From: Haliotis rufescens
Lineage: Eukaryota
Assembly (NCBI RefSeq): GCF_023055435.1
Contig: NW_025963813.1
Span: forward strand, 5,456,001 to 5,520,000
Direction of reading: 5' to 3'
DNA: 64,000 bases
In this document: positions 3,555 through 64,000 of the stretch, one piece after another
Position numbering within the stretch: the first letter of the stretch is position 1
Layout of the letters: every line of letters starts with the position of its first letter
Program-made: the position numbers and the translations under genes
Notes under the pieces: generated by a model
Told to the model about the DNA's origin: nothing
What the model saw: the letters and a program-made list of their open reading frames with translations, nothing else
The model's database searches: none

Positions 3555-3851
3555 AACAGGGTACTATATTCTCCTATTTACCTTCCGGGTCATGGTAAAA
3601 CTTAGGGGACGTAACTGTGTCTGAGGCCATCTGAGAGGGAATCTGCTTCCTTGAAGATTCATATTGCGCTGGCCTCTTGAAAAGAACAAACAGATTTGGA
3701 CTTGTTTTTGTGGATTTTTTTTCTAGAAATCTTGTTGTATTATTGGACATCTGCTCTACCTTATAAGGCCTTAATGTTATCATCACCCCATGGGTGCATT
3801 GAGTCACATGTGTCACTTTTTTAGTTTGAACATTCGCACGGCTGTAATTAT
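3555..3851. repeat. Diverged partial copy of the array spacer (homologous to ~4290-4587) at the left edge of the array
   Basis: Aligns by eye to 4290-4587 with more mismatches than array units show to each other, then joins at 'tat' (3849-3851) to sequence matching 6942 onward. Confidence 0.85.
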
Positions 3852-4780
3852 GTCCCATGTATGACCCCCTTCCAGCCTTACCTGCCCACACCCACCAACA
3901 AAACTCCACCACCGGAGTTGAACATTCATCTGGCCTCAAAGCACAATGATTTTCCTTCTTTGCTATCTGCAGTGACATGTCAACCCACATTAATTAATAT
4001 CGTTCATAGGCTGTTCTTCTGTTGCATGACTAACCTGTCACTTACAACTTACACCGCAAACTACCAGCCTGGGTCCAGCAGCTCGATTTCCAAATAACCA
4101 CTGTCAACAATGGTCAGTGGAAGTATCGAGCCTAAACACACAGATCGACCTTTAAACTGGGGGTCAAATCATGGAAAGCTGGAGTCAATATCATGTACTC
4201 ATTTGGGATCAAAACAAATTATCAAGAAAATACAATGTCGAATCTCATGTCAAGCAAAACATATCTGGCCCAGACTCAACAAACCATCGAACAGAGCACT
4301 ACATTCTCCTCTTTACCTTCCGGATCATGGTAAAACTTAAGGGCCGTAACTGTGGTCTGAGGCCATCTGAGAGGGAATCTGCTTCCTTGAAGATTCATAT
4401 TGCGCTGGATTCTTGAAAAGAACAAACAAATTTGGACTTGTTTTTTGTGTGGGCTTTTCTAGAAATCTTGTTGTTTTATTGGACATCTGCTCTACCTTAT
4501 AAGGCCTTAATGTTATCGTCACCCCATGGGTGCATTGAGTCACACGTGTCACTTTTTCAGTTTGAACTTTCGCACGGCTGTAATTATAAAGTAGGTGGGC
4601 GTTTAGAGGCCGTAATGACAGTATGATACTAAAAGGGGACTCCGTGCATTTTCGGACAGAAATTGTCCACTTGCTTGGTTCAACATGTTTATAGGTTTAC
4701 TCATCTGCCTTCGAGCTTCAGGACCTTTGTGGACAATGATTCTAATGTGACAATCACTGTGCAGGACATTGAAAAGTAAG

Positions 4781-4965
4781 CAGTGGAACTACAATTAACT
4801 ACTTTTATAACAAACACGCTTATAACGAACTGACGGATATAAAGTATTGCCCTTAGGTCCCGGACTTTTGCTACATATATCCTGTATATGTGCTTATAAT
4901 GAACTACGGTTATAACGAACTAAAATATGTGGTCTCTTTGAGTTCGTTATGACCGTGGTTTACTG
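4781..4965. mobile_element. Degenerate MITE-like non-autonomous DNA transposon (CAGT...ACTG ends, Tc1/mariner-pogo-like), one per array unit
   Basis: Left end cagtggaact, right end gaccgtggtttactg. Internal direct repeats ttataac(g/a)aa and an inverted copy ttcgttatgaccgt. TA target duplication not intact. Confidence 0.5.
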
Positions 4966-5041
4966 TGGCTGATACTATCTTGAATTTGGTTGTACTTGAA
5001 GAAAATATAAGCCAAGAGAAAATTACAATATACATGGCAGT

Positions 5042-5047
5042 TTTATT
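5042..5047 (-). terminator. Polyadenylation signal AATAAA of Gly/His gene copy 1 (present in all units except copy 18)
   Basis: Plus-strand tttatt, 112 nt past the stop codon, followed on the minus strand by T-rich sequence. Confidence 0.7.
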
Positions 5048-5158
5048 TGTGCGCGTTGAGGAATATACAGCTTTGGTCGATGCAGCATGGCGAGTGGAAT
5101 CGACAAACATGATATCAAATGTCCAGCATTTGATGTGAATATGATGATACTTGAATGT

Positions 5159-5799
5159 TTAACCGTGGTGTCCGCCTCCATGACCACCACCTCCATGGCC
5201 ACCTCCGTGACCGCCACCGTGGCCTCCTCCATGACCTCCACCGTGACCTCCTCCATGACCTCCTCCATGGCCGCCACCTCCGTGTCCTCCGCCATGACCT
5301 CCTTTGCCGCCACCGTGGCCGCCACCTCCATGGCCGCCTCCTCCGTGTCCTTTGCCACCTCCTCCGTGGCCACCTCCTCCGTGTCCTTTGCCACCTCCGT
5401 GACCACCTCCATGACCACCTCCGTGACCACCACCATGACCTCCTCCATGGCCGCCGCCTCCATGACCACCACCGTGGCCTCCACCTCCATGACCACCACC
5501 ACCATGGCCACCAAGGACGGAGCCAAGGAAGACTGTAAAGAATGTGAAGAAAAAACAATGCATAAGTGGTCATAGATGACAGGATGCATACATACAAAAT
5601 CCGTCTACCAATTTTAATAAATGTTTACATCATGGTAGAAACAATCCTGATCATAACGTTGTCAGTATTATCGTAAAGCCATTTAAAACTCAGCAATAGC
5701 TCATAAAGTTGATTATTAGAAAGCTTGGGAATGCGAATTCGCATCAGATAAGGCAAACGTACCCAAGACTACAACAACTGCAACATTAAGAAGGCGCAT
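5159..5799 (-). CDS. Secreted Gly/His-rich repeat protein, copy 1 (136 aa, one extra Gly); exons 5799-5763 and 5532-5159
   Basis: ATG CGC CTT CTT AAT GTT GCA GTT GTT GTA GTC TTG G|gtacgt ... ttttttcttcacattctttacag|TC TTC CTT GGC. The phase-1 splice gives signal peptide MRLLNVAVVVVLVFLGSVLG followed by (GGGH/GGGGH)n. Confidence 0.9.
5533..5762 (-). other. 230-nt phase-1 GT-AG intron within the signal-peptide coding sequence (same length in all 19 copies)
   Basis: Donor G|gtacgt, polypyrimidine tract and cag acceptor. The offset between flanking track ORFs is 259 bp in every unit. Confidence 0.85.
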
Positions 5800-5838
5800 C
5801 CTGCCAGTTACGTTTATCCACTTGAGAATAAACGATTT

Positions 5839-5873
5839 GAATGTCGCTATTGTGATTCACCACACCTTATATA
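5839..5873 (-). promoter_or_regulatory. Core promoter: TATATAA (5873-5867) and initiator-like CATTC with predicted TSS ~5842; repeated in each unit
   Basis: The TATA box starts 31 nt upstream of the A of CATTC, giving a ~43-nt 5' UTR with no upstream ATG. Confidence 0.7.
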
Positions 5874-8249
5874 CTTGTGGTTCAGGAAATCAGGATGTTG
5901 AATGTAAATGCCCTCATTGGAAGATTTTCGAAAAGAAAATTCCAAGCGACTTTTTACACCCTGAGAGCGTGAAGAGTGAATCTTTATTATGTAATATCAC
6001 ATGGGACGGTGTCACCTGCCTCTCTATTTTATGCATATCTTCCTGCATAATTATAAAAATCAAGCTGTGTATTTGTGACCTAACCTGGCACCCAGTGGCT
6101 AGCTCACTGCTGGGAAGCATGATAGATTTAACTGTTCATCCAATGCAATTTCAAGCTACAGATGATTAGTGAGAAAAAAAATGAATGGAGAGAGAATTTA
6201 TAAATGAATGACAAATGTTGAACTCCAGTATTTCGTTGAGTGCATGTATTGAGTCTAGTAGGCTGCCATTACTATGGGTCCAGGAGGTTTATCAACCTAT
6301 GTCAAATGCGTGTTTTAAAGCAAAATGTTATGGGAAGGTCATTATTCCTTTCTTCATAATGAAACTTGATGTGAAGAGGGAAATGTTCAAGTTTGAGATA
6401 TATTTTCAAAGTTTGAATTCCTACTTTTATAATCTCAAAGCCACATTATCTTCTATAATAAAACAAACTTCTTCTTTTTCTGTAACTAGCAAATCTTAAA
6501 TTGCCGTTCAGGTAGCGCAACAATTACCAAAAATATCCAAACTGCTTTAATGAAAACGAACTTCATCTTATTTTCAAAAGAACTGATAATATCAATATTT
6601 ATCATGATATGAACCCGGAAGTAGACACAGCTTTGTCTTGGCTAAGCCGTCCTTAGTAGGCGTACGGATAAAAAACAAACGAGCAGGGTGTAACTGTGAG
6701 TTAGTGTTAGAGTGTGTGTCTGCGTTGTGGTCTGGAACTGGATCTGTGTTTGAGTGTGAAAGTCCGGGCCACATTTAACTTGGTAACTGGCCCAAACCAT
6801 ATTTTTATAGATTGTCGTAAAATCTCAGCTCTCCACATCACATGTGGACATGATATACTAATCCATCAGACGAATACCTGATGTAACCACTATTTCCGCA
6901 GGAACATGTATGCGGTGGTGGTGGTACAACTAACGATCTATGACCCATGTATGACCCCCTTCCAGCCTTACCTGCCCACACCCATCAACAAAACTCCACC
7001 ACCGGAGTTGAACATTCATCTGGCCTCAAAGCACAATGATTTTCCTTCTTTGCTATCTGCAGTGACATGTCAACCCACATTAATTAATATCGTTCATAGG
7101 CTGTTCTTCTGTTGCATGACTAACCTGTCACTTACAACTTACACCGCAAACTACCAGCCTGGGTCCAGCAGCTCGATTTCCAAATAACCACTGTCAACAA
7201 TGGTCAGTGGAAGTATCGAGCCTAAACACACAGATCGACCTTTAAACTGGGGGTCAAATCATGGAAAGCTGGAGTCAATATCATGTACTCATTTGGGATC
7301 AAAACAAATTATCAAGAAAATACAATGTCGAATCTCATGTCAAGCAAAACATATCTGGCCCAGACTCAACAAACCATCGAACAGAGCACTACATTCTCCT
7401 CTTTACCTTCCGGGTCATGGTAAAACTTAAGGGACGTAACTGTGGTCTGAGGCCATCTGAGAGGGAATCTGCTTCCTTGAAGATTCATATTGCGCTGGAT
7501 TCTTGAAAAGAACAAACAAATTTGGACTTGTTTTTTTGTGTAGGCTTTTCTAGAAATCTTGTTGTTTTATTGGACATCTGCTCTACCTTATAAGGCCTTA
7601 ATGTTATCGTCACCCCATGGGTGCATTGAGTCACACGTGTCACTTTTTCAGTTTGAACTTTCGCACGGCTGTAATTATAAAGTAGGTGGGCGTTTAGAGG
7701 CCGTAATGACAGTATGATACTAAAAGGGGACTCCGTGCATTTTCGGACAGAAATTGTCCACTTGCTTGGTTCAACATGTTTATAGGTTTACTCATCTGCC
7801 TTCGAGCTTCAGGACCTTTGTGGACAATGATTCTAATGTGACAATCACTGTGCAGGACATTGAAAAGTAAGCAGTGGAACTACAATTAACTACTTTTATA
7901 ACAAACACGCTTATAACGAACTGACGGATATAAAGTATTGCCCTTAGGTCCCGGGCTTTTGCTACATATATCCTATATATGTGCTTATAATGAACTACGG
8001 TTATAACGAACTAAAATATGTGGTCTCTTTGAGTTCGTTATGACCGTGGTTTACTGTGGCTGATACTATCTTGAATTTGGTTGTACTTGAAGAAAATATA
8101 AGCCAAGAGAAAATTACAATATACATGGCAGTTTTATTTGTGCTCGTTGAGGAATATACAGCTTTGGTCGATGCAGCATGGCGAGTGGAATCGACAAAAA
8201 TGATATCAAATGTCCAGCATTTGATGTGAATATGATGATACTTGAATGT

Positions 8250-8887
8250 TTAACCGTGGTGTCCGCCTCCATGACCACCACCTCCATGGCCACCTCCGTG
8301 ACCGCCACCGTGGCCTCCTCCATGACCTCCACCGTGACCTCCTCCATGACCTCCTCCATGGCCGCCACCTCCGTGTCCTCCGCCATGACCTTCTTTGCCG
8401 CCACCGTGGCCGCCACCTCCATGGCCGCCTCCTCCGTGTCCTTTGCCACCTCCGTGGCCACCTCCTCCGTGTCCTTTGCCACCTCCGTGACCACCTCCAT
8501 GACCACCTCCGTGACCACCACCATGACCTCCTCCATGGCCGCCGCCTCCATGACCACCACCGTGGCCTCCACCTCCATGACCACCACCACCATGGCCACC
8601 AAGGACGGAGCCAAGGAAGACTGTAAAGAATGTGAAGAAAAAACAATGCATAAGTGGTCATAGATGACAGGATGCATACATACAAAATCCGTCTACCAAT
8701 CCTAATAAATGTTTACATCATGGTAGAAACTATCCTGATCATAACGTTGTCAGTATTATCGTAAAGCCATTTAAAACTCAGCAATAGCTCATAAAGTTGA
8801 TTATTAGAAAGCTTGGGAATGCGAATTCGCATCAGATAAGGCAAACGTACCCAAGACTACAACAACTGCAACATTAAGAAGGCGCAT
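8250..8887 (-). CDS. Gly/His-rich secreted protein copy 2 (135 aa, G>E in KEGH); exons 8887-8851, 8620-8250
   Basis: Same splice sites and open frame as copy 1. Confidence 0.9.
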
Positions 8888-11337
8888 CCTGCCAGTTACG
8901 TTTATCCACTTGAGAATAAACGATTTGAATGTCGCTATTGTGATTCACCACACCTTATATACTTGTGGTTCAGGAAATCAGGATGTTGAATGTAAATGCC
9001 CTCATTGGAAGATTTTCGAAAAGAAAATTCCAAGCGACTTTTTACACCCTGAGAGCGTGAAGAGTGAATCTTTATTATGTAATATCACATGGGACGGTGT
9101 CACCTGCCTCTCTATTTTATGCATATCTTCCTGCATAATTATAAAAATCAAGCTGTGTATTTGTGACCTAACCTGGCACCCAGTGGCTAGCTCACTGCTG
9201 GGAAGCATGATAGATTTAACTGTTCATCCAATGCAATTTCAAGCTACAGATGATTAGTGAGAAAAAAAATGAATGGAGAGAGAATTTATAAATGAATGAC
9301 AAATGTTGAACTCCAGTATTTCGTTGAGTGCATGTATTGAGTCTAGTAGGCTACCATTACTATGGGTCCAGGAGGTTTATCAACCTATGTCAAATGCGTG
9401 TTTTAAAGCAAAATGTTATGGGAAGGTTATTATTCCTTTCTTCATAATGAAACTTGATGTGAAGAGGGAAATGTTCAAGTTTGAGATATATTTTCAAAGT
9501 TTGAATTCCTACTTTTATAATCTCAAAGCCACATTATCTTCTATAATAAAACAAACTTCTTCTTTTTCTGTAACTAGCAAATCTTAAATTGCCGTTCAGG
9601 TAGCGCAACAATTACCAAAAATATCCAAACTGCTTTAATGAAAACGAACTTCATCATATTTTCAAAAGAACTGATAATATCAATATTTATCATGATATGA
9701 ACCCGGAAGTAGACACAGCTTTGTCTTGGCTAAACCGTCCTTAGTAGGCGTACGGATAAAAAACAAACGAGCAGGGTGTAACTGTGAGTTAGTGTTAGAG
9801 TGTGTGTCTGCGTTGTGGTCTGGAACTGGGTCTGTGTTTGAGTGTGAAAGTCCGGGCCACATTTAACTTGGTAACTGGCCCAAACCATATTTTTATAGAT
9901 TGTCGTAAAATCTCAGCTCTCCACATCACATGTGGACATGATATACTAATCCATCAGACGAATACCTGATGTAACCACTATTTCCCCAGGAACATGTATG
10001 CGGTGGTGGTGGTACAACTAACGATCTATGACCCATGTATGACCCCCTTCCAGCCTTACCTGCCCACACCCATCAACAAAACTCCACCACCGGAGTTGAA
10101 CATTCATCTGGCCTCAAAGCACAATGATTTTCCTTCTTTGCTATCTGCAGTGACATGTCAACCCACATTAATTAATATCGTTCATAGGCTGTTCTTCTGT
10201 TGCATGACTAACCTGTCACTTACAACTTACACCGCAAACTACCAGCCTGGGTCCAGCAGCTCGATTTCCAAATAACCACTGTCAACAATGGTCAGTGGAA
10301 GTATCGAGCCTAAACACACAGATCGACCTTTAAACTGGGGGTCAAATCATGGAAAGCTGGAGTCAATATCATGTACTCATTTGGGATCAAAACAAATTAT
10401 CAAGAGAATACAATGTCGAATCTCATGTCAAGCAAAACATATCTGGCCCAGACTCAACAAACCATCGAACAGAGCACCACGTTCTCCTCTTTACCTTCCG
10501 GGTCATGGTAAAACTTAAGGGACGTAACTGTGGTCTGAGGCCATCTGAGAGGGAATCTGCTTCCTTGAAGATTCATATTGCGCTGGATTCTTGAAAAGAA
10601 CAAACAAATTTGGACTTGTTTTTTTGTGTGGGCTTTTCTAGAAATCTTGTTGTTTTATTGGACATCTGCTCTACCTTATAAGGCCTTAATGTTATCATCA
10701 CCCCATGGGTGCACTGAGTCACACGTGTCACTTTTTTAGTTTGAACTTTCGCACGGCTGTAATTATAAAGTAGGTGGGCGTTCAGAGGCCGTAATGACAG
10801 TATGATACTAAAAGGGGACTCCGTGCATTTTCGGACAGAAATTGTCCACTTGCTTGGTTCAACATGTTTATAGGTTTACTCATCTGCCTTCGAGCTTCAG
10901 GACCTTTGTGGACAATGATTCTAATGTGACAATCACTGTGAAGGACATTGAAACGTAAGCAGTGGAACTACAATTAACTACTTTTATAACGAACACGCTT
11001 ATAACGAACTGACGGATATAAAGTATTGCCCTTAGGTCCCGGACTTTTGCTACATATATCCTGTATATGTGCTTATAATGAACTACGGTTATAACGAACT
11101 AAAATATGTGGTCTCTTTGAGTTCGTTATGACCGTGGTTTACTGTGGCTGATACTATCTTGAATTTGGTTGTACTTGAAGAAAATATAAGCCAAGAGAAA
11201 AGTACAATATACATGGCAGTTTTATTTTTGCTCGTTGAGGAATATACAGCTTTGGTCGATGCAGCATGGCGAGTGGAATCGACAAACATGATATCAAATG
11301 TCCAGCATTTGATGTGAATATGATGATACTTGAATGT

Positions 11338-11975
11338 TTAACCGTGGTGTCCGCCTCCATGACCACCACCTCCATGGCCACCTCCGTGACCGCCACCGTG
11401 GCCTCCTCCATGACCTCCACCGTGACCTCCTCCATGACCTCCTCCATGGCCGCCACCTCCGTGTCCTCCGCCATGACCTCCTTTGCCGCCACCGTGGCCG
11501 CCACCTCCATGGCCGCCTCCTCCGTGTCCTTTGCCACCTCCGTGGCCACCTCCTCCGTGTCCTTTGCCACCTCCGTGACCACCTCCATGACCACCTCCGT
11601 GACCACCACCATGACCTCCTCCATGGCCGCCGCCTCCATGACCACCACCGTGGCCTCCACCTCCATGACCACCACCACCATGGCCACCAAGGACGGAGCC
11701 AAGGAAGACTGTAAAGAATGTGAAGAAAAAACAATGCATAAGTGGTCATAGATGACAGGATGCATACATACAAAATCCGTCTACCAATCCTAATAAATGT
11801 TTACATCATGGTAGAAACTATCCTGATCATAACGTTGTCAGTATTATCGTAAAGCCATTTAAAACTCAGCAATAGCTCATAAAGTTGATTATTAGAAAGC
11901 TTGGGAATGCGAATTCGCATCAGATAAGGCAAACGTACCCAAGACTACAACAACTGCAACATTAAGAAGGCGCAT
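11338..11975 (-). CDS. Gly/His-rich secreted protein copy 3 (135 aa); exons 11975-11939, 11708-11338
   Basis: Same splice sites and open frame as copy 1. Confidence 0.9.
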
Positions 11976-14425
11976 CCTGCCAGTTACGTTTATCCACTTG
12001 AGAATAAACGATTTGAATGTCGCTATTGTGATTCACCACACCTTATATACTTGTGGTTCAGGAAATCAGGATGTTGAATGTAAATGCCCTCATTGGAAGA
12101 TTTTCGAAAAGAAAATTCCAAGCGACTTTTTACACCCTGAGAGCGTGAAGAGTGAATCTTTATTATGTAATATCACATGGGACGGTGTCACCTGCCTCTC
12201 TATTTTATGCATATCTTCCTGCATAATTATAAAAATCAAGCTGAGTATTTGTGACCTAACCTGGCACCCAGGGGCTAGCTCACTGCTGGGAAGCATGATA
12301 GATTTAACTGTTCATCCAATGCAATTTCAAGCTACAGATGAATAGTGAGAAAAAAAATGAATGGAGAGAGAATTTATAAATGAATGACAAATGTTGAACT
12401 CCAGTATTTCGTTGAGTGCATGTATTGAGTCTAGTAGGCTACCATTACTATGGGTCCAGGAGGTTTATCAACCTATGTCAAATGCGTGTTTTAAAGCAAA
12501 ATGTTATGGGAAGGTCATTATTCTTTTCTTCATAATGAAACTTGATGTGAAGAGGGAAATGTTCAAGTTTGAGATATATTTTCAAAGTTTGAATTCCTAC
12601 TTTTATAATCTCAAAGCCACATTATCTTCTATAATAAAACAAACTTCTTCTTTTTCTGTAACTAGCAAATCTTAAATTGCCGTTCAGGTAGCGCAACAAT
12701 TACCAAAAATATCCAAACTGCTTTAATGAAAACGAACTTCATCTTATTTTCAAAAGAACTGATAATATCAATATTTATCATGATATGAACCCGGAAGTAG
12801 ACACAGCTTTGTCTTGGCTAAGCCGTCCTTAGTAGGCGTACGGATAAAAAACAAACGAGCAGGGTGTAACTGTGAGTTAGTGTTAGAGTGTGTGTCTGCG
12901 TTGTGGTCTGGAACTGGGTCTGTGTTTGAGTGTGAAAGTCCGGGCCACATTTAACTTGGTAACTGGCCCAAACCATATTTTTATAGATTGTCGTAAAATC
13001 TCAGCTCTCCACATCACATGTGGACATGATATACTAATCCATCAGACGAATACCTGATGTAACCACTATTTCCCCAGGAACATGTATGCGGTGGTGGTGG
13101 TACAACTAACGATCTATGACCCATGTATGACCCCCTTCCAGCCTTACCTGCCCACACCCATCAACAAAACTCCACCACCGGAGTTGAACATTCATCTGGC
13201 CTCAAAGCACAATGATTTTCCTTCTTTGCTATCTGCAGTGACATGTCAACCCACATTAATTAATATCGTTCATAGGCTGTTCTTCTGTTGCATGACTAAC
13301 CTGTCACTTATAACTTACACCGCAAACTACCAGCCTGGGTCCAGCAGCTCGATTTCCAAGTAACCACTGTCAACAATGGTCAGTAGAAGTATCGAGCCTA
13401 AACACACAGATCGACCTTTAAACTGGGGGTCAAATCATGGAAAGCTGGAGTCAATATCATGTACTCATTTGGGATCAAAACAAATTATCAAGAAAATACA
13501 ATGTCGAATTTCATGTCAAGCAAAACATATCTGGCCCAGACTCAACAAACCATCGAACAGAGCACTACATTCTCCTCTTTACCTTCCGGATCATGGTAAA
13601 ACTTAAGGGACGTAACTGTGGTCTGAGGCCATCTGAGAGGGAATCTGCTTCCTTGAAGATTCATATTGCGCTGGATTCTTGAAAAGAACAAACAAATTTG
13701 GACTTGTTTTTTTGTGTGGGCTTTTCTAGAAATCTTGTTGTTTTATTGGACATCTGCTCTACCTTATAAGGCCTTAATGTTATCATCACCCCATGGGTGC
13801 ACTGAGTCACACGTGTCACTTTTTTAGTTTGAACTTTCGCACGGCTGTAATTATAAAGTAGGTGGGCGTTTAGAGGCCGTAATGACAGTATGATACTAAA
13901 AGGGGACTCCGTGCATTTTCGGACAGAAATTGTCCACTTGCTTGGTTCAACATGTTTATAGGTTTACTCATCTGCCTTCGAGCTTCAGGACCTTTGTGGA
14001 CAATGATTCTAATGTGACAATCACTGTGAAGGACATTGAAACGTAAGCAGTGGAACTACAATTAACTACTTTTATAACGAACACGCTTATAACGAACTGA
14101 CGGATATAAAGTATTGCCCTTAGGTCCCGGACTTTTGCTACATATATCCTGTATATGTGCTTATAATGAACTACGGTTATAACGAACTAAAATATGTGGT
14201 CTCTTTGAGTTCGTTATGACCGTGGTTTACTGTGGCTGATACTATCTTGAATTTGGTTGTACTTGAAGAAAATATAAGCCAAGAGAAAAGTACAATATAC
14301 ATGGCAGTTTTATTTTTGCTCGTTGAGGAATATACAGCTTTGGTCGATGCAGCATGGCGAGTGGAATCGACAAACATGATATCAAATGTCCAGCATTTGA
14401 TGTGAATATGATGATACTTGAATGT

Positions 14426-15063
14426 TTAACCGTGGTGTCCGCCTCCATGACCACCACCTCCATGGCCACCTCCGTGACCGCCACCGTGGCCTCCTCCATG
14501 ACCTCCACCGTGACCTCCTCCATGACCTCCTCCATGGCCGCCACCTCCGTGTCCTCCGCCATGACCTCCTTTGCCGCCACCGTGGCCGCCACCTCCATGG
14601 CCGCCTCCTCCGTGTCCTTTGCCACCACCGTGGCCACCTCCTCCGTGTCCTTTGCCACCTCCGTGACCACCTCCATGACCACCTCCGTGACCACCACCAT
14701 GACCTCCTCCATGGCCGCCGCCTCCATGACCACCACCGTGGCCTCCACCTCCATGACCACCACCACCATGGCCACCAAGGACGGAGCCAAGGAAGACTGT
14801 AAAGAATGTGAAGAAAAAACAATGCATAAGTGGTCATAGATGACAGGATGCATACATACAAAATCCGTCTACCAATCCTAATAAATGTTTACATCATGGT
14901 AGAAACTATCCTGATCATAACGTTGTCAGTATTATCGTAAAGCCATTTAAAACTCAGCAATAGCTCATAAAGTTGATTATTAGAAAGCTTGGGAATGCGA
15001 ATTCGCATCAGATAAGGCAAACGTACCCAAGACTACAACAACTGCAACATTAAGAAGGCGCAT
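14426..15063 (-). CDS. Gly/His-rich secreted protein copy 4 (135 aa); exons 15063-15027, 14796-14426
   Basis: Same structure; synonymous Gly change shared with copy 5. Confidence 0.9.
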
Positions 15064-52245: not shown

Positions 52246-54695
52246 CCTGCCAGTTACGTTTATCCACTTGAGAATAAACGATTTGAATGTCGCTATTGTG
52301 ATTCACCACACCTTATATACTTGTGGTTCAGGAAATCAGGATGTTGAATGTAAATGCCCTCATTGGAAGATTTTCGAAAAGAAAATTCCAAGCGACTTTT
52401 TACACCCTGAGAGCGTGAAGAGTGAATCTTTATTATGTAATATCACATGGGACGGTGTCACCTGCCTCTCTATTTTATGCATATCTTCCTGCATAATTAT
52501 AAAAATCAAGCTGTGTATTTGTGACCTAACCTGGCACCCAGTGGCTAGCTCACTGCTGGGAAGCATGATAGATTTAACTGTTCATCCAATGCAATTTCAA
52601 GCTACAGATGATTAGTGAGAAAAAAAATGAATGGAGAGAGAATTTATAAATGAATGACAAATGTTGAACTCCAGTATTTCGTTGAGTGCATGTATTGAGT
52701 CTAGTAGGCTGCCATTACTATGGGTCCAGGAGGTTTATCAACCTATGTCAAATGCGTGTTTTAAAGCAAAATGTTATGGGTAGGTCACTATTCCTTTCTT
52801 CATAATGAAACTTGATGTGAAGAGGGAAATGTTCAAGTTTGAGATATATTTTCAAAGTTTGAATTCCTACTTTTATAATCTCAAAGCCACATTATCTTCT
52901 ATAATAAAACAAACTTCTTCTTTTTCTGTAACTAGCAAATCTTAAATTGCCGTTCAGGTAGCGCAACAATTACCAAAAATATCCAAACTGCTTTAATGAA
53001 AACGAACTTCATCTTATTTTCAAAAGAACTGATAATATCAATATTTATCATGATATGAACCCGGAAGTAGACACAGCTTTGTCTTGGCTAAACCGTCCTT
53101 AGTAGGCGTACGGATAAAAAACAAACGAGCAGGGTGTAACTGTGAGTTAGTGTTAGAGTGTGTGTCTGCGTTTTGGTCTGGAACTGGGTCTGTGTTTGAG
53201 TGTGAAAGTCCGGGCTACATTTAACTTGGTAACTGGCCCAAACCATATTTTTATAGATTGTCGTAAAATCTCAGCTCTCCACATCACATGTGGACATGAT
53301 ATACTAATCCATCAGACGAATACCTGATGTAACCACTATTTCCGCAGGAACATGTATGCGGTGGTGGTGGTACAACTAACGATCTATGACCCATGTATGA
53401 CCCCCTTCCAGCCTTACCTGCCCACACCCACCAACAAAACTCCACCACCGGAGTTGAACATTCATCTGGCCTCAAAGCACAATGATTTTCCTTCTTTGCT
53501 ATCTGCAGTGACATGTCAACCCACATTAATTAATATCGTTCATAGGCTGTTCTTCTGTTGCATGACTAACCTGTCACTTATAACTTACACCGCAAACTAC
53601 CAGCCTGGGTCCAGCAGCTCGATTTCCAAGTAACCACTGTCAACAATGGTCAGTGGAAGTATCGAGCCTAAACACACAGATCGACCTTTAAACTGGGGGT
53701 CAAATCATGGAAAGCTGGAGTCAATATCATGTACTCATTTGGGATCAAAACAAATTATCAAGAAAATACAATGTCGAATCTCATGTCAAGCAAAACATAT
53801 CTGGCCCAGACTCAACAAACCATCGAACAGAGCACTACATTCTCCTCTTTACCTTCCGGCTCATGGTAAAACTTAAGGGACGTAACTGTGGTCTGAGGCC
53901 ATCTGAGAGGGAATCTGCTTCCTTGAAGATTCATATTGCGCTGGATTCTTGAAAAGAACAAACAAATTTGGACTTGTTTTTGTGTGTGGGCTTTTCTAGA
54001 AATCTTGTTGTTTTATCGGACATCTGCTCTACCTTATAAGGCCTTAATGTTATCATCACCCCATGGGTGCACTGAGTCACACGTGTCACTTTTTTAGTTT
54101 GAACTTTCGCACGGCTGTAATTATAAAGTAGGTGGGCGTTTAGAGGCCGTAATGACAGTATGATACTAAAAGGGGACTCCGTGCATTTTCGGACAGAAAT
54201 TGTCCACTTGCTTGGTTCAACATGTTTATAGGTTTACTCATCTGCCTTCGAGCTTCAGGACCTTTGTGGCCAATGATTCTAATGTGACAATCACTGTGCA
54301 GGACATTGAAACGTAAGCAGTGGAACTACAATTAACTACTTTTATAACGAACACGCTTATAACGAACTGACGGATATAAAGTATTGCCCTTAGGTCCCGG
54401 ACTTTTGCTACATATATCCTGTATATGTGCTTATAATGAACTACGGTTATAACGAACTAAAATATGTGGTCTCTTTGAGTTCGTTATGACCGTGGTTTAC
54501 TGTGGCTGATACTATCTTGAATTTGGTTGTACTTGAAGAAAATATAAGCCAAGAGAAAATTACAATATACATGGCAGTTTTATTTGTGCTCGTTGAGGAA
54601 TATACAGCTTTGGTCGATGCAGCATGGCGAGTGGAATCGACAAACATGATATCAAATGTCCAGCATTTGATGTGAATATGATGATACTTGAATGT

Positions 54696-55333
54696 TTAAC
54701 CGTGGTGTCCGCCTCCATGACCACCACCTCCATGGCCACCTCCGTGACCGCCACCGTGGCCTCCTCCATGACCTCCACCGTGACCTCCTCCATGACCTCC
54801 TCCATGGCCGCCACCTCCGTGTCCTCCGCCATGACCTCCTTTGCCGCCACCGTGGCCGCCACCTCCATGGCCGCCTCCTCCGTGTCCTTTGCCACCTCCG
54901 TGGCCACCTCCTCCGTGTCCTTTGCCACCTCCGTGACCACCTCCATGACCACCTCCGTGACCACCACCATGACCTCCTCCATGGCCGCCGCCTCCATGAC
55001 CACCACCGTGGCCTCCACCTCCATGACCACCACCACCATGGCCACCAAGGACGGAGCCAAGGAAGACTGTAAAGAATGTGAAGAAAAAACAATGCATAAG
55101 TGGTCATAGATGACAGGATGCATACATACAAAATCCGTCTACCAATCCTAATAAATGTTTACATCATGGTAGAAACTATCCTGATCATAACGTTGTCAGT
55201 ATTATCGTAAAGCCATTTAAAACTCAGCAATAGCTCATAAAGTTGATTATTAGAAAGCTTGGGAATGCGAATTCGCATCAGATAAGGCAAACGTACCCAA
55301 GACTACAACAACTGCAACATTAAAAAGGCGCAT
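54696..55333 (-). CDS. Gly/His-rich secreted protein copy 17 (135 aa, L4F in the signal peptide); exons 55333-55297, 55066-54696
   Basis: Plus-strand taaaaaggcgcat instead of taagaaggcgcat changes CTT to TTT; otherwise the same structure. Confidence 0.88.
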
Positions 55334-57766
55334 CCTGCCAGTTACGTTTATCCACTTGAGAATAAACGATTTGAATGTCGCTATTGTGATTCACCACACC
55401 TTATATACTTGTGGTTCAGGAAATCAGGATGTTGAATGTAAATGCCCTCATTGGAAGATTTTCGAAAAGAAAATTCCAAGCGACTTTTTACACCCTGAGA
55501 GCGTGAAGAGTGAATCTTTATTATGTAATATCACATGGGACGGTGTCACCTGCCTCTCTATTTTATGCATATCTTCCTGCATAATTATAAAAATCAAGCT
55601 GTGTATTTGTGACCTAACCTGGCACCCAGTGGCTAGCTCACTGCTGGGAAGCATGATAGATTTAACTGTTCATCCAATGCAATTTCAAGCTACAGATGAT
55701 TAGTGAGAAAAAAAATGAATGGAGAGAGAATTTATAAATGAATGACAAATGTTGAACTCCAGTATTTCGTTGAGTGCATGTATTGAGTCTAGTAGGCTGC
55801 CATTACTATGGGTCCAGGAGGTTTATCAACCTATGTCAAATGCGTGTTTTAAAGCAAAATGTTATGGGAAGGTCATTATTCCTTTCTTCATAATGAAACT
55901 TGATGTGAAGAGGGAAATGTTCAAGTTTGAGATATATTTTCAAAGTTTGAATTCCTACTTTTATAATCTCAAAGCCACATTATCTTCTATAATAAAACAA
56001 ACTTCTTCTTTTTCTGTAACTAGCAAATCTTAAATTGCCGTTCAGGTAGCGCAACAATTACCAAAAATATCCAAACTGCTTTAATGAAAACGAACTTCAT
56101 CTTATTTTCAAAAGAACTGATAATATCAATATTTATCATGATATGAACCCGGAAGTAGACACAGCTTTGTCTTGGCTAAACCGTCCTTAGTAGGCGTACG
56201 GATAAAAAACAAACGAGCAGGGTGTAACTGTGAGTTAGTGTTAGTGTGTGTGTCTGCGTTGTGGTCTGGAACTGGGTCTGTGTTTGAGTGTGAAAGTCCG
56301 GGCCACATTTAACTTGGTAACTGGCCCAAACCATATTTTTATAGATTGTCGTAAAATCTCAGCTTTCCACATCACATGTGGACATGATATACTAATCCAT
56401 CAGACGAATACCTGATGTAACCACTATTTCCGCAGGAACATGTATGCGGTGGTGGTGGTACAACTAACGATCTATGACCCATGTATGACCCCCTTCCAGC
56501 CTTACCTGCCCACACCCATCAACAAAACTCCACCACCGGAGTTGAACATTCATCTGGCCTCAAAGCACAATGATTTTCCTTCTTTGCTATCTGCAGTGAC
56601 ATGTCAACCCACATTAATTAATATCGTTCATAGGCTGTTCTTCTGTTGCATGACTAACCTGTCACTTATAACTTACACCGCAAACTACCAGCCTGGGTCC
56701 AGCAGCTCGATTTCCAAGTAACCACTGTCAACAATGGTCAGTGGAAGTATCGAGCCTAAACACACAGATCGACCTTTAAACTGGGGGTCAAATCATGGAA
56801 AGCTGGAGTCAATATCATGTACTCATTTGGGATCAAAGCAAATTATCAAGAAAATACAATGTCGAATCTCATGTCAAGCAAAACACATCTGGCCCAGACT
56901 CAACAAACCATCGAACAGAGCACTACATTCTCCTCTTTACCTTCCGGATCATGGTAAAACTTAAGGGACGTAACTGTGGTCTGGGGCCATCTGAGAGGGA
57001 ATCTGCTTCCTTGAAGATTCATATTGCGCTGGATTCTTGAAAAGAACAAACAAATTTGGACTTGTTTTTTTGTGTGGGCTTTTCTAGAAATCTTGTTGTT
57101 TTATTGGACATCTGCTCTACCTTATAAGGCCTTAATGTTATCATCACCCCATGGGTGCACTTTTTTAGTTTGAACTTTCGCACGGCTGTAATTATAAAGT
57201 AGGTGGGCGTTTAGAGGCCGTAATGACAGTATGATACTAAAAGGGCACTCCGTGCATTTTCGGACAGAAATTGTCCACTTGCTTGGTTCAACATGTTTAT
57301 AGGTTTACTCATCTGCCTTCGAGCTTCAGGACCTTTGTGGACAATGATTCTAATGTGACAATCACTGTGCAGGACATTGAAACGTAAGCAGTGGACCTAC
57401 AATTAACTACTTTTATAACGAACACGCTTATAACGAACTGACGGATATAAAGTATTGCCCTTAGGTCCCGGACTTTTGCTACATATATCCTGTATATGTG
57501 CTTATAATGAACTACGGTTATAACGAACTAAAATATGTGGTCTCTTTGAGTTCGTTATGACCGTGGTTTACTGTGGCTGATACTATCTTGAATTTGGTTG
57601 TACTTGAAGAAAATATAAGCCAAGAGAAAATTACAATATACATGGCAGTTGAATTTGTGCTCGTTGAGGAATATACAGCTTTGGTCGATGCAGCATGGCG
57701 AGTGGAATCGACAAACATGATATCAAATGTCCAGCATTTGATGTGAATATGATGATACTTGAATGT

Positions 57767-58404
57767 TTAACCGTGGTGTCCGCCTCCATGACCACCACCT
57801 CCATGGCCACCTCCGTGACCGCCACCGTGGCCTCCTCCATGACCTCCACCGTGACCTCCTCCATGACCTCCTCCATGGCCGCCACCTCCGTGTCCTCCGC
57901 CATGACCTCCTTTGCCGCCACCGTGGCCGCCACCTCCATGGCCACCTCCTCCGTGTCCTTTGCCACCTCCGTGGCCACCTCCTCCGTGTCCTTTGCCACC
58001 TCCGTGACCACCTCCATGACCACCTCCGTGACCACCACCATGACCTCCTCCATGGCCGCCGCCTCCATGACCACTACCGTGGCCTCCACCTCCATGACCA
58101 CCACCACCATGGCCACCAAGGACGGAGCCAAGGAAGACTGTAAAGAATGTGAAGAAAAAACAATGCATAAGTGGTCATAGATGACAGGATGCATACATAC
58201 AAAATCCGTCTACCAATCCTAATAAATGTTTACATCATGGTAGAAACTATCCTGATCATAACGTTGTCAGAATTATCATAAAGCCATTTAAAACTCAGCA
58301 ATGGCTCATAAAGTTGATTATTAGAAAGCTTGGGAATGCGAGTTCGCATCAGATAAGGCAAACGTACCCAAGACTACAACAACTGCAACATTAAGAAGGC
58401 GCAT
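57767..58404 (-). CDS. Gly/His-rich secreted protein copy 18 (135 aa, G>S; polyA signal mutated); exons 58404-58368, 58137-57767
   Basis: Open frame and intact splice sites; AATAAA changed to AATTCA near 57650. Confidence 0.8.
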
Positions 58405-60855
58405 CCTGCCAGTTACGTTTATCCACTTGAGAATAAACGATTTGAATGTCGCTATTGTGATTCACCACACCTTATATACTTGTGGTTCAGGAAATCAGGA
58501 TGTTGAATGTAAATGCCCTCATTGGAAGATTTTCGAAAAGAAAATTCCAAGCGACTTTTTACACCCTGAGAGCGTGAAGAGTGAATCTTTATTATGTAAT
58601 ATCACATGGGACGGTGTCACCTGCCTCTCTATTTTATGCATATCTTCCTGCATAATTATAAAAATCAAGCTGTGTATTTGTGACCTAACCTGGCACCCAG
58701 TGGCTAGCTCACTGCTGGGAAGCATGATAGATTTAACTGTTCATCCAATGCAATTTCAAGCTACAGATGATTAGTGAGAAAAAAAATGAATGGAGAGGGA
58801 ATTTATAAATGAATGACAAATGTTGAACTCCAGTATTTCGTTGAGTGCATGTATTGAGTCTAGTAGGCTGCCATTACTATGGGTCCAGGAGGTTTATCAA
58901 CCTATGTCAAATGCGTGTTTTAAAGCAAAATGTTATGGGAAGGTCATTATTCCTTTCTTCATAATGAAACTTGATGTGAAGAGGGAAATGTTCAAGTTTG
59001 AGATATATTTTCAAAGTTTGAATTCCTACTTTTATAATCTCAAAGCCACATTATCTTCTATAATAAAACAAACTTCTTCTTTTTCTGTAACTAGCAAATC
59101 TTAAATTGCCGTTCAGGTAGCGCAACAATTACCAAAAATATCCAAACTGCTTTAATGAAAACGAACTTCATCTTATTTTCAAAAGAACTGATAATATCAA
59201 TATTTATCATGATATGAACCCGGAAGTAGACACAGCTTTGTCTTGGCTAAACCGTCCTTAGTAGGCGTATGGATAAAAAACAAACGAGCAGGGTGTAACT
59301 GTGAGTTAGTGTTAGAGTGTGTGTCTGCGTTTTGGTCTGGAACTGGGTCTGTGTTTGAGTGTGAAAGTCCGGGCCACATTTAACTTGGTAACTGGCCCAA
59401 ACCATATTTTTATAGATTGTCGTAAAATCTCAGCTCTCCACATCACATGTGGACATGATATACTAATCCATCAGACGAATACCTGATGTAACCACTATTT
59501 CCGCAGGAACATGTATGCGGTGGTGGTGGTACAACTAACGATCTATGACCCATGTATGACCCCCTTCCAGCCTTACCTGCCCACACCCACCAACAAAACT
59601 CCACCACCGGAGTTGAACATTCATCTGGCCTCAAAGCACAATGATTTTCCTTCTTTGCTATCTGCAGTGACATGTCAACCCACATTAATTAATATCGTTC
59701 ATAGGCTGTTCTTCTGTTGCATGACTAACCTGTCACTTACAACTTACACCGCAAACTACCAGCCTGGGTCCAGCAGCTCGATTTCCAAATAACCACTGTC
59801 AACAATGGTCAGTGGAAGTATCGAGCCTAAACACACAGATCGACCTTTAAACTGGGGGTCAAATCATGGAAAGCTGGAGTCAATATCATGTACTCATTTG
59901 GGATCAAAACAAATTATCAAGAAAATACAATGTCGAATCTCATGTCAAGCAAAACATATCTGGCCCAGACTCAACAAACCATCGAACAGAGCACTACGTT
60001 CTCCTCTTTACCTTCCGGGTCATGGTAAAACTTAAGGGACGTAACTGTGGTCTGAGGCCTTCTGAGAGGGAATCTGCTTCCTTGAAGATTCATATTGCGC
60101 TGGATTCTTGAAAAGAACAAACAAATTTGGACTTGTTTTTTTTGTGTAGGCTTTCTAGAAATCTTGTTGTTTTATTAGACATCTGCTCTACCTTATAAGG
60201 CCTTAATGTTATCGTCACCCCATGGGTGCATTGAGTCACACGTGTCACTTTTTTAGTTTGACCATTCGCACGGCTGTAATTATAAAGTAGGTGGGCGTTT
60301 AGAGGCCGTAATGATAGTATGATACTAAAAGGGGACTCCGTGCATTTTCGGACAGAAATTGTCCACTTGCTTGGTTCAACATGTTTATAGGTTTACTCAT
60401 CTGCCTTCGAGCTTCAGGACCTTTGTGGACAATGATTCTAATGTGACAATCACTGTGCAGGACATTGAAAAGTAAGCAGTGGAACTACAATTAACTACTT
60501 TTATAACAAACACGCTTATAACGAACTGACGGATATAAAGTATTGCCCTTAGGTCCCGGACTTTTGCTACATATATCCTGTATATGTGCTTATAATGAAC
60601 TACGGTTATAACGAACTAAAATATGTGGTCTCTTTGAGTTCGTTATGACCGTGGTTTATTGTGGCTGATACTATCTTGAATTTGGTTGTACTTGAAGGAA
60701 ATATAAGCCAAGAGAAAATTACAATATACATGGCAGTTTTATTTGTGCTCGTTGAGGAATATACAGCTTTGGTCGATGCAGCATGGCGAGTGGAATCGAC
60801 AAAATTTGATATCAAATGTCCAGCATTTGATGTGAATATGATGATACTTGAATGT

Positions 60856-61493
60856 TTAACCGTGGTGTCCGCCTCCATGACCACCACCTCCATGGCCACC
60901 TCCGTGACCGCCACCGTGGCCTCCTCCATGACCTCCACCGTGACCTCCTCCATGACCTCCTCCATGGCCGCCACCTCCGTGTCCTCCGCCATGACCTCCT
61001 TTGCCGCCACCGTGGCCGCCACCTCCATGGCCGCCTCCTCCGTGTCCTTTGCCACCTCCGTGGCCACCTCCTCCGTGTCCTTTGCCACCTCCGTGACCAC
61101 CTCCATGACCACCTCCGTGACCACCACCATGACCTCCTCCATGGCCGCCGCCTCCATGACCACCACCGTGGCCTCCACCTCCATGACCACCACCACCATG
61201 GCCACCAAGGACGGAGCCAAGGAAGACTGTAAAGAATGTGAAGAAAAAACAATGCATAAGTGGTCATAGATGACAGGATGCATACATACAAAATCCGTCT
61301 ACCAATCCTAATAAATGTTTACATCATGGTAGAAACTATCCTGATCATAACGTTGTCAGTATTATCGTAAAGCCATTTAAAACTCAGCAATAGCTCATAA
61401 AGTTGATTATTAGAAAGCTTGGGAATGCGAATTCGCATCAGATAAGGCAAACGTACCCAAGACTACAACAACTGCAACATTAAGAAGGCGCAT
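60856..61493 (-). CDS. Gly/His-rich secreted protein copy 19 (135 aa); exons 61493-61457, 61226-60856
   Basis: Same splice sites and open frame. Confidence 0.9.
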
Positions 61494-63906
61494 CCTGCCA
61501 GTTACGTTTATCCACTTGAGAATAAACGATTTGAATGTCGCTATTGTGATTCACCACACCTTATATACTTGTGGTTCAGGAAATCAGGATGTTGAATGTA
61601 AATGCCCTCATTGGAAGATTTTCGAAAAGAAAATTCCAAGCGACTTTTTACACCCTGAGAGCGTGAAGAGTGAATCTTTATTATGTAATATCACATGGGA
61701 CGGTGTCACCTGCCTCTCTATTTTATGCATATCTTCCTGCATAATTATAAAAATCAAGCTGTGTATTTGTGACCTAACCTGGCACCCAGTGGCTAGCTCA
61801 CTGCTGGGAAGCATGATAGATTTAACTGTTCATCCAATGCAATTTCAAGCTACAGATGATTAGTGAGAAAAAAAATGAATGGAGAGAGAATTTATAAATG
61901 AATGACAAATGTTGAACTCCAGTATTTCGTTGAGTGCATGTATTGAGTCTAGTAGGCTACCATTACTATGGGACCAGGAGGTTTATCAACCTATGTCAAA
62001 TGCGTGTTTTAAAGCAAAATGTTATGGGAAGGTCATTATTCCTTTCTTTAAATGAAACTTGATGTGAAGAGGGAAATGTTCAAGTTTGAATTCCTACTTT
62101 TATAATCTCAAAGCCACATTATCTTCTATAATAAAACAAACTTCTTCTTTTTCTGTAACTAGCAAATCTTAAATTGCCGTTCAGGTAGCGCAACAATTAC
62201 CAAAAATATCCAAACTGCTTTAATGAAAACGAACTTCATCTTATTTTCAAAAGAACTGATAATATCAATATTTATCATGATATGAACCCGGAAGTAGACA
62301 CAGCTTTGTCTTGGCTAAACCGTCCTTAGTAGGCGTACGGATAAAAAACAAACGAGCAGGGTGTAACTGTGAGTTAGTGTTAGTGTGTGTGTCTGCGTTG
62401 TGGTCTGGAACTGGGTCTGTGTTTGAGTGTGAAAGTCCGGGCCACATTTAACTTGGTAACTGGCCCAAACCATATTTTTATAGATTGTCGTAAAATCTCA
62501 GCTTTCCACATCACATGTGGACATGATATACTAATCCATCAGACGAATACCTGATGTAACCACTATTTCCGCAGGAACATGTATGCGGTGGTGGTGGTAC
62601 AACTAACGATCTATGACCCATGTATGACCCCCTTCCAGCCTTACCTGCCCACACCCACCAACAAAACTCCACCACCGGAGTTGAACATTCATCTGGCCTC
62701 AAAGCACAATGATTTTCCTTCTTTGCTATCTGCAGTGACATGTCAACCCACATTAATTAATATCGTTCATAGGCTGTTCTTCTGTTGCATGACTAACCTG
62801 TCACTTATAACTTACACCGCAAACTACCAGCCTGGGTCCAGCAGCTCGATTTCCAAGTAACCACTGTCAACAATGGTCAGTGGAAGTATCGAGCCTAAAC
62901 ACACAGATCGACCTTTAAACTGGGGGTCAAATCATTGAAAGCTGGAGTCAATATCATGTACTCATTTGGGATCAAAGCAAATTATCAAGAAAATACAATG
63001 TCGAATCTCATGTCAAGCAAAACATATCTGGCCCAGACTCAACAAACCATCGAACAGAGCACTACATTCTCCTCTTTACCTTCCGGATCATGGTAAAACT
63101 TAAGGGACGTAACTGTGGTCTGAGGCCATCTGAGAGGGAATCTGCTTCCTTGAAGATTCATATTGCGCTGGATTCTTGAAAAGAACAAACAAATTTGGAC
63201 TTGTTTTTTTGTGTGGGCTTTTCTAGAAATCTTGTTGTTTTATTGGACATCTGCTCTACCTTATAAGGCCTTAATGTTATCATCACCCCATGGGTGCACT
63301 TTTTTAGTTTGAACTTTCGCACGGCTGTAATTATAAAGTAGGTGGGCGTTTAGAGGCCGTAATGACAGTATGATACTAAAAGGGCACTCCGTGCATTTTC
63401 GGACAGAAATTGTCCACTTGCTTGGTTCAACATGTTTATAGGTTTACTCATCTGCCTTCGAGCTTCCGGACCTTTGTGGACAATGATTCTAATGTGACAA
63501 TCACTGTGCAGGACATTGAAACGTAAGCAGTGGAACTACAATTAACTACTTTTATAACAAACACGCTTATAACGAACTGACGGATATAAAGTATTGCCCT
63601 TAGGTCCCGGACTTTTGCTACATATATCCTGTATATGTGCTTATAATGAACTACGGTTATAACGAACTAAAATATGTGGTCTCTTTGAGTTCGTTATGAC
63701 CGTGGTTTACTGTGGCTGATACTATCTTGAATTTGGTTGTACTTGAAGGAAATATAAGCCAAGAGAAAATTACAATATACATGGCAGTTTTATTTGTGCT
63801 CGTTGAGGAATATACAGCTTTGGTCGATGCAGCATGGCGAGTGGAATCGACAAACATGATATCAAATGTCCAGCATTTGATGTGAATATGATGATACTTG
63901 AATGTT

Positions 63907-64000
63907 TTAACCGTGGTGTCCGCCTCCATGACCACCACCTCCATGGCCACCTCCGTGACCGCCACCGTGGCCTCCTCCATGACCTCCACCGTGACCTCCT
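63907..64000 (-). CDS. Gly/His-rich secreted protein copy 20, C-terminal part only (cut by the window edge)
   Basis: Matches the ...GGGHGGGGHGGGHHG-stop end of the other copies. Confidence 0.85.
   Translation of the reverse strand, partial: GGHGGGHGGGHGGGHGGGHGGGGHGGGHHG

Follow-up and report, generated by a model that had tools for sequence, protein, structure and literature searches.

Why should the genome of a mollusc hold a long series of near-identical genes for a protein made of little else than glycine (Gly) and histidine (His)? The question is raised by a stretch of 64,000 nucleotides (nt) from the abalone Haliotis rufescens (contig NW_025963813.1, here C35; C35:5456001-5520000), which we call the window and most of which is occupied by a head-to-tail array of units, each with a gene for a putatively secreted poly-Gly/His protein. 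Abalone is a textbook model of biomineralisation, and the whole genome sequence, 1.33 Gb in 615 contigs with ~40% GC, was searched together with the window. An origin from abalone is supported by exons of the Egg_lysin family (PF01303) on contig C556, which score above the curated cut-off and have no counterpart in the control genomes; the family is known from abalone and related vetigastropods only. It turns out that ~130 genes of this family take up ~360 kb of the genome in three array types, named A (the array of the window), B and C. We regard it as a tentative proposition, falling somewhat short of an even chance, that these are a real, selectively maintained and dosage-amplified family of autonomous genes transcribed by RNA polymerase II in three kinds of head-to-tail array. 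As for the product, the reading that we favour, and again hold at slightly less than even, is that of a bulk, metal-coordinating or cross-linkable matrix polymer, an idea which leans on analogy with known proteins.

The array in the window is regular. A 41-nt anchor at the start of the unit occurs 20 times between positions 3860 and 62623, and the spacing of these anchors is mostly 3088 bp, with 3152 bp in two units and 3068-3090 bp in some. In the multiple alignment the units show pairwise identities of 98.5-100%, and the 19 complete ones differ from one another at 208 alignment columns. They hold 19 complete genes, all on the minus strand. By blastn of one unit against the contig and by a census of exon 1, the whole type A array was found to cover C35:5459514-5550386, ~91 kb with 29 genes, all of which are intact. 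Since a gap of undetermined bases (N) leaves the left junction of the array not fully assembled, this copy number is a lower bound. The array also contains a higher-order duplication: a block of three units (units 9-11, from position 28566) is repeated as units 12-14 (from 37893), with identities of 99.8% between units 9 and 12, 100% between units 10 and 13 and 99.7% between units 11 and 14. The coordinates of these and all other features are collected in Table 1.

Each unit carries a gene with all of its own signals. A TATATAAGG box, recognised as a sequence signal, sits 74 nt upstream of the ATG in every gene and is followed ~31 nt downstream by an initiator-like (Inr-like) CATTC, from which a 5'-untranslated region (5'UTR) of ~43 nt would follow. 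Exon 1 extends from the ATG to the G preceding the GTACGT donor, and after the intron the second exon runs to a stop codon common to all copies. The genes of the window encode products of 135-146 amino acids (aa), in each of which a hydrophobic leader is followed by Gly, His and lysine (Lys) only and by a common HHG-stop (19/19). As all six frames are open across the GGN repeats, an open frame by itself means little here. What is informative is that in every copy the leader exon and the shared HHG-stop are joined by one and the same frame, and that the length variants are all multiples of three. These results bear out a preliminary description of the locus, which had claimed a homogenised tandem amplification of at least 20 copies of a ~3088-bp unit, a complete gene in each unit with promoter, two exons, intron and polyadenylation site, and open frames and splice sites kept in all 19 complete copies: there are 20 unit starts in the window, the array continues to 29 genes, the sequence confirms autonomous two-exon genes, and frame and GT-AG splice sites are intact in 19/19 genes in the window and in 29/29 of the whole array.

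The 3'-untranslated region (3'UTR) contains a palindromic element which was considered as a possible RNA hairpin. This idea is unsupported, since folding of the 3'UTR gave no stable structure (z = +1.8) and no stable hairpin is predicted in context; a perfect 21-mer in a region that is 77% identical between types is, moreover, only weakly significant taken alone. A search for RNA families in the first 10.1 kb returned a chance-level match only.

What kind of protein would such a gene make? The leader has a basic start, a hydrophobic run and a small-X-Gly end, and is split over exons 1 and 2. Judged by the small-X-small rule rather than by a predictor, the signal peptide of all three types would most likely be cleaved behind Gly20, where V/A-X-G meets GH. 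The mature type A chain then has 115 residues, namely 86 Gly, 26 His and 3 Lys (8.87 kDa; 75% Gly, 23% His), and the major allele is free of acidic and aromatic residues, of Ala and of Cys, with no N- or O-glycosylation sites. Runs of Gly are 3-4 residues long in type A and 4-8 in type B, and all 26 His residues except the penultimate pair are followed by GGG or GGGG. The calculated net charge of the mature type A chain falls from about +28 at pH 5 to +23 at pH 6 and +3 at pH 8.1. AlphaFold2 gave the exon-2 product a mean pLDDT of 44.8 and no secondary structure, a prediction consistent with an intrinsically disordered chain.

Similarity searches attached the product to nothing known. Among 8000 scored candidates no protein homologue of exon 2 was found at E <= 0.001, low complexity limiting the search; the ESM Atlas gave no usable match for exon 2, such a search being weak for low-complexity queries; and an exact cluster look-up of the genomic open reading frames (ORFs) of types A, B and C returned no match, which for queries of this complexity is prone to be uninformative. 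In the literature, no description of a poly-Gly/His family of abalone was found.

The array of the window is not the only one. A genome-wide census gave 105 matches to the leader exon with its donor motif (types A and B only), 131 matches to the 21-nt 3'UTR palindrome with at most one mismatch, and 130 matches to the promoter pattern TCCTGATTTCCT-N10-TATAWAAGG. All of the matches listed lie in the arrays or in one truncated relic, and controls with reversed patterns gave 0. We also considered that the promoter might be common to other amplified secreted-protein families of the genome, and rejected this because the pattern is confined to the poly-Gly/His arrays. For type C and for the central part of type B the count comes from motif positions only, and part of type C was also checked directly.

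The type B unit is ~2780 bp long and its product, of 108-115 aa, reads as (G4-8H)n with no Lys. Two contigs carry it, C47 with 38 copies and C246 with 37, and on each the series runs into the right end. Because the unique flanks lie at opposite ends of the two arrays relative to gene direction, the two cannot be haplotigs of each other, and they look like the two ends of one unclosed array of at least 75 copies, as far as their layout tells. The introns of type B, 236-262 nt, contain a (TG)n tract whose length differs from copy to copy in steps of 2 nt, a convenient internal marker to distinguish them. A solitary relic of type B lies on C47, 156 kb from the type B array and in the opposite orientation. 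Type C has a unit of ~2490 bp, and in its 147-aa product a (G4K) block precedes a (G4H) block; the 26-27 copies lie at C35:3816062-3879095, 1.6 Mb upstream of the type A array, and the stretch just right of them holds no additional Gly-rich gene. The products of the three types differ in Lys content: type B has none, type A has 3 residues, and type C has 11, which form a block of their own.

When one gene of each type was aligned, common blocks were found along the gene: upstream blocks, the TATA box, the Inr-like CATTC ~31 nt downstream of it and the 5'UTR, then the leader exon, the splice sites and the first mature residues GGHGGGG, and finally the last residues GHHG-stop, the 3'UTR palindrome and AATAAA. 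Between types A and B identity is 84-88% in the noncoding parts and 86% in the intron; it rises to 97% in exon 1 and over the opening 38 nt of exon 2, and to 100% over the final 30 nt of the coding sequence. Between types A and C the noncoding parts are 73-81% identical. The spacers of A and B are also homologous (77% identity), which indicates that the whole unit is ancestral. The exception is an element resembling a miniature inverted-repeat transposable element (MITE), which is found in A only and has inverted TTATAACGAAC / GTTCGTTAT ends ~75 nt downstream of the poly(A) signal. It has 2443 candidates genome-wide at first look and corresponds to a gap in the A-B match, and so explains part of the difference in unit length between type A (3088 bp) and type B (2780 bp).

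Is the gene within these units maintained? Across the 29 copies of array A none of the 74 sites of core promoter and 5'UTR is variable, exon 1 has one variable site in 37 and exon 2 seven in 371, compared with 7.0% in the intron, 5.5-9.4% in the spacer and 9.9% in the 3'UTR. Pooled, the core promoter, 5'UTR and coding parts have 8 variable sites in 482 versus 179 in 2606 elsewhere (Fisher p = 1e-6), and the core promoter and coding parts are 4-5 times less variable than intron and spacer. The 29 copies comprise 12 distinct coding sequences, and the product is identical in 19 of them. The coding variants consist of three synonymous sites, in up to 5-6 copies, and five nonsynonymous changes in 1-2 copies each, together with length variants of +33 (twice), +12, -33 and +3 nt. 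In addition, the Gly codons of types A and B are GGA, GGT and GGC: GGG makes up 0/86 in A, 0/75 in B and 3/101 in C, with 3/36 in neighbouring genes. Avoidance of this kind is usual in repetitive genes with very high expression, a resemblance drawn from codon counts against a small set of neighbouring genes rather than a genome-wide calibration.

The variation between copies is itself ordered. Divergence is below 1% within arrays and 14-25% between them (noncoding, 12-16% for A-B and 19-27% for A-C); within array A it averages 0.88% overall and 0.68% between adjacent copies. Copies 27-29 at the right edge have 99.25, 98.93 and 98.41% identity to the array majority, compared with 99.4-99.7% in the interior. 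Only two dead members were found, one being a type B edge copy with the acceptor AG changed to AT, a dead site, and the other the truncated relic on C47. Complete units standing head to tail, a likeness within arrays much greater than that between them, and weaker homogenisation at the edges are what is found here, and to judge from this pattern the poly-Gly/His arrays are under concerted evolution, with unequal exchange keeping each of them homogeneous. As a collapsed or invented repeat would not show ordered variation, an assembly artefact is unlikely for array A. These patterns in the sequence point to a real, maintained and concertedly evolving gene family rather than an artefact.

In these respects the arrays are like the early histone repeats of sea urchins and ribosomal DNA (rDNA), which have head-to-tail units of a few kb made of a complete gene and a spacer, less than 1% divergence within an array and much more between arrays, decay at the edges and higher-order duplications. 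They are unlike them in that the abalone product is an apparently lineage-restricted, putatively secreted, low-complexity polypeptide and not a universal housekeeping molecule, that each unit has one gene, and that the three diverged types differ in Lys content.

From what is directly observed, which is the gene anatomy, the copy number in the assembly, the conservation pattern, the composition and the absence of a predicted fold, we infer transcription, secretion, the cleavage site, metal binding, a material role and the tissue concerned. Each gene would yield a pre-protein of ~110-150 aa, and removal of the signal peptide would free a fold-less Gly3-4-His chain, of ~8.9 kDa in type A, whose chemistry would amount to imidazoles set 4-5 residues apart along a backbone of maximal flexibility, in some types together with the amines of Lys. 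Such a chain could act as a pH-switched extracellular polymer, strongly cationic and self-repelling in acidic secretory vesicles (~+23 to +28) and near-uncharged in sea water (~+3), where His would coordinate Cu or Zn or be cross-linked by quinones. Most likely the polymer would serve in bulk within a secreted matrix built on chitin or protein, such as that of radula, jaw, periostracum, organic layers of the shell or an adhesive, and the many gene copies would allow a large output from few secretory cells or within a short developmental window. That the product is identical in 19 of 29 copies suggests a demand for quantity and not for diversity. Worm jaws and squid beak contain Gly/His-rich proteins that are kept soluble until a rise of pH, the addition of metal or quinone cross-linking makes them condense or harden (PMC9999432), and the change of charge between vesicle and sea water fits condensation or hardening of the same kind.

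Regarding metal binding, the prion octarepeat offers a precise model: at high occupancy each HGGG(W) takes up one Cu2+, with His and the amides of the next two Gly as its ligands, and at low occupancy about four His wrap one Cu2+ with a dissociation constant near 1e-10 M (PMC2663819). Both the octarepeat, (PHGGGWGQ)n, and the abalone chain have His followed by three Gly in tandem within a disordered extracellular segment, so that the sequence needed for such a Cu2+ site, His then at least two Gly in tandem, is present in the abalone chain, as read from its translation. On the other hand, the abalone chain lacks Pro, Trp and Gln and has 26 rather than 4 sites, and the octarepeat is the tail of a folded protein anchored by glycosylphosphatidylinositol, whereas the abalone protein is predicted to be free and secreted. 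The comparison is offered as a chemical analogy only.

The jaw proteins are among the closest known systems. Glycera MTP and Nereis Nvjp-1 are likewise secreted, disordered, dominated by Gly and His and built of short tri- or tetrapeptide repeats, and they serve as metal-binding (Cu, Zn) bulk polymers of hard unmineralised tissue (PMC9999432). In composition they are different: MTP, of 30 kDa, has 49% Gly and 40% His in a GGH/GHG/GGHH grammar without any Gly run longer than two, and also includes Asp, Glu, Lys and Ala; in Nvjp-1, His makes up 27% and Gly 36%, and Asp, Glu and Tyr are present as well (PMC9999432). With its 9 kDa, 75% Gly, 23% His and Gly runs of 3-8, the abalone chain departs from the compositional grammar of the jaw proteins. 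The preliminary description had proposed compositional analogies with these jaw proteins and with antimicrobial peptides such as holotricin 3, and had not recognised the gene. Both are still analogies: the motif (HGGG)3H is common to the abalone chain and holotricin 3, and the Glycera and Nereis proteins differ in composition and repeat grammar. The gene remains as unrecognisable as it was then, neither a homologue nor a paper having come out of the exon-wise protein searches and the literature. By analogy, this is a family that would work like known His/Gly-rich proteins yet belongs to none of them.

Several points weigh against the idea of a matrix polymer. Transcription and secretion are predicted from the genomic sequence, and the copy number is that of the assembly. 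The chain lacks Tyr and Phe, the residues that aid condensation in known His-rich structural proteins; the sequence closest to it in motif belongs to an antifungal peptide of insects, similar in size; and its C-terminal Gly is typical of amidated bioactive peptides. One paper on an abalone shell proteome reports no Gly/His-rich protein, a negative that is weak because type B, having no Lys or Arg, would escape trypsin-based proteomics; papers on abalone silk-like proteins also make no mention of a poly-Gly/His family. As for the conservation, synonymous variation is reduced too, and the low variation may partly come from more efficient gene conversion in the GC-rich exon and not from selection, and slippage of GGT-type triplets would be expected to change the length in frame. 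A bolder form of the matrix-polymer idea is possible but rather doubtful, and it too is argued by analogy: the abalone may have an unnoticed protein material or coating of near-pure poly(Gly3-4-His), to which coordination of Cu or Zn, or quinone links between His and Lys residues, would give its hardness or gel state, a convergence with the jaws of bloodworm and clam worm. It would be supplied by ~130 homogenised genes, the three array types of which, without Lys, with a few Lys and with a Lys block, would form a co-polymer set tuning the cross-link chemistry, and the chains, having few or no tryptic sites, would have been missed by proteomics.

The same chain could also be a weapon. As a host-defence effector, comparable with Gly/His-rich antimicrobial and especially antifungal peptides like holotricin 3, tenecin 3, Sarcophaga AFP, shepherins and histatins, it would be secreted into haemolymph or mucus, take on positive charge at acidic pH and work by binding cell walls or membranes or through Cu/Zn chemistry, with amplification serving a fast and massive response. 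We think this unlikely, though it is the main rival of the matrix polymer. Holotricin 3 of Holotrichia diomphalia, tenecin 3 and Sarcophaga AFP are, like the abalone chain as predicted, secreted, Cys-free and dominated by Gly, with His at every fourth residue and a length that for all of these chains falls within 80-115 residues; among sequences printed in 8.4 million papers the exact (HGGG)3H occurs only in holotricin 3, which is similar in size (84 versus 115 residues), has a signal peptide and lacks Cys as well. The C-terminal Gly might be an amidation donor, a TATA-type promoter is typical of inducible genes, and type C has a permanently cationic Lys block. Yet immune effector families usually diversify, and here 19 of 29 products are identical and the arrays homogenised; the ~130 copies are far above any antimicrobial gene cluster known to us, and the insect antifungal peptides are not known to have more than single or few-copy genes; and the peptide would be near-uncharged at the pH of sea water and haemolymph. 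The likeness to the insect peptides is, besides, compositional and without homology: they belong to a different phylum, contain Pro, Gln, Tyr, Phe, Arg, Ser, Asn and Asp, are not pure repeats, and no alignment-based homology was found in a search limited by low complexity. Shepherins, antimicrobial peptides of 28-38 residues from the plant Capsella which are cut from one glycine-rich precursor, are near-pure Gly/His like the abalone chain and have a period of GGH, compared with GGGH or GGGGH in abalone.

Alternatively, the protein might be a soluble extracellular buffer or carrier of Cu or Zn (or Ni) in haemolymph, gut or mucus, for detoxification or for copper supply, for example to haemocyanin. 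The 26 His, each followed by at least 2-3 Gly, give the minimal Cu2+ site of the prion octarepeat, multi-His binding is possible, and the chain, if cleaved as predicted, would begin with Gly-His, similar to the copper-binding tripeptide GHK; there are copper-dependent lytic polysaccharide monooxygenase (LPMO) genes within the same 2 Mb, including one at 12.8 kb from the array, perhaps by coincidence. Against this, buffering rarely needs more than 100 gene copies, metal handling in molluscs uses metallothioneins and His-rich glycoproteins of quite different make-up, and the Lys-block type C would have no obvious role. We hold such a carrier to be quite improbable. A last alternative, which we consider very improbable, gives the family no organismal function at all, and takes it as a satellite-like amplification that carries a silent or barely transcribed gene, or as a copy number inflated by the assembly. 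It is true that array A adjoins a gap of N and both type B arrays end at contig ends, that open frames are automatic in GGN repeats, and that slippage would yield in-frame indels. However, the copies are distinguishable (12 coding variants; 208 differing columns in 19 window units), and they show isolation by distance, a gradient of decay at the edge and a higher-order duplication of three units within the array. Conservation extends over promoter, leader exon, splice sites and C-terminus among paralogous types that are 14-25% different elsewhere, dead copies occur only at array edges or as the truncated relic, and GGG codons are avoided.

Table 1. Coordinates of the features described (positions in the window unless a contig is named; the gene parts listed are those of the representative unit).
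Feature	Position	Strand	Remark
Type A array, window part	3514..64000	-	1 degenerate partial unit, 19 complete genes, start of 20th unit
130-N gap	3291..3420	.	94 bp left of type A array
Degenerate partial unit, left edge	3514..3851	.	90% identity to unit positions 389-729
Representative 3088-bp unit (copy 3, major protein allele)	10038..13125	-	
3152-bp unit variant	28566..31717	-	Extra 33-nt coding repeat (146-aa product), ~31-bp spacer duplication
Second 3152-bp unit variant	37893..41044	-	Twin of the 28566-31717 unit
MITE-like dispersed repeat, ~175 bp	10971..11146	.	Same place in every type A spacer
Core promoter (TCCTGATTTCCT motif, 10 nt, TATATAAGG box)	12041..12071	-	Family-specific pattern
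Exon 1, 37 nt	11939..11975	-	First 12 signal-peptide residues and one base of codon 13 (phase-1 split)
Intron, 230 nt	11709..11938	-	GTACGT to TTTACAG; canonical in 29/29 copies
Exon 2 coding part, ~371 nt	11338..11708	-	Signal-peptide end, 115 Gly/His/Lys residues, HHG-stop
21-nt palindromic 3'UTR element (ATCAAATG-CTGGA-CATTTGAT)	11293..11313	-	Conserved in all three array types
AATAAA polyadenylation signal	11221..11226	-	111 nt after stop; position conserved in types A, B, C
Two-exon gene just left of array	772-885 and 2029-2253	+	112-aa secreted-looking product
LPMO exon (Pfam LPMO_10, E = 4.7e-11)	C35:5563168-5563740	-	12.8 kb past array right end, same strand
Solitary relic	C47:215790-216150 (exon-1 match C47:215900)	-	Type B promoter, exon 1, first half of intron, then unrelated sequence

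The surroundings of the arrays deserve a short description. The gene just left of array A encodes a product with a leader of hydrophobic residues, a run of PPPPP, two Cys and a 12-residue peptide between KR and RNRR sites, which by these features could be a small prohormone-like precursor. The intron of this gene holds, at window positions 1005-1640, an imperfect microsatellite of CACACT/CACGCA type, ~600 bp long (Tandem Repeats Finder: period 6, 87 copies, 68% matches), and a stretch at 2290-2480 with a tRNA-like box B (GGTTCGGTCCCCGG) looks, by eye, like a tRNA-derived short interspersed element. On the other side of the array, the LPMO exon belongs to one of 19 LPMO loci in the genome, three of which (C35 3.53, 5.31 and 5.56 Mb) lie in the 2-Mb interval holding arrays A and C; this proximity may hint at a context of chitin and copper, or may be coincidence. 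Near the other arrays, remnants of Tc1/mariner-like transposases, recognised from ORF text, flank type B (L015:953-1756, minus strand) and type C (L030:5022-6005, minus strand), and long minisatellites open on both strands adjoin type C (L030:7218-8780) and type B (L032:75-1500), the one beside type B reading as a 10-residue repeat of the kind HNICYRVTDAG.

If expressed as we infer, the poly-Gly/His family would be among the largest tandem amplifications of protein-coding genes known to us outside the histones, and its product the simplest natural His polymer so far, with three residue types. It would provide a natural system for relating the spacing of imidazoles, at every fourth or fifth residue, and the presence of a Lys block to metal binding, pH switching and condensation; for studying how gene dosage brings about a very high output of one small secreted protein; and for following concerted evolution as it acts on coding arrays. 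Should the arrays prove silent, they would be a warning that intact-looking amplified genes require transcript evidence. For the biology of abalone and for its aquaculture, the family would, if the inference is true, mean a new matrix component, or else a high-capacity defence or copper-handling molecule in a copper-sensitive animal.

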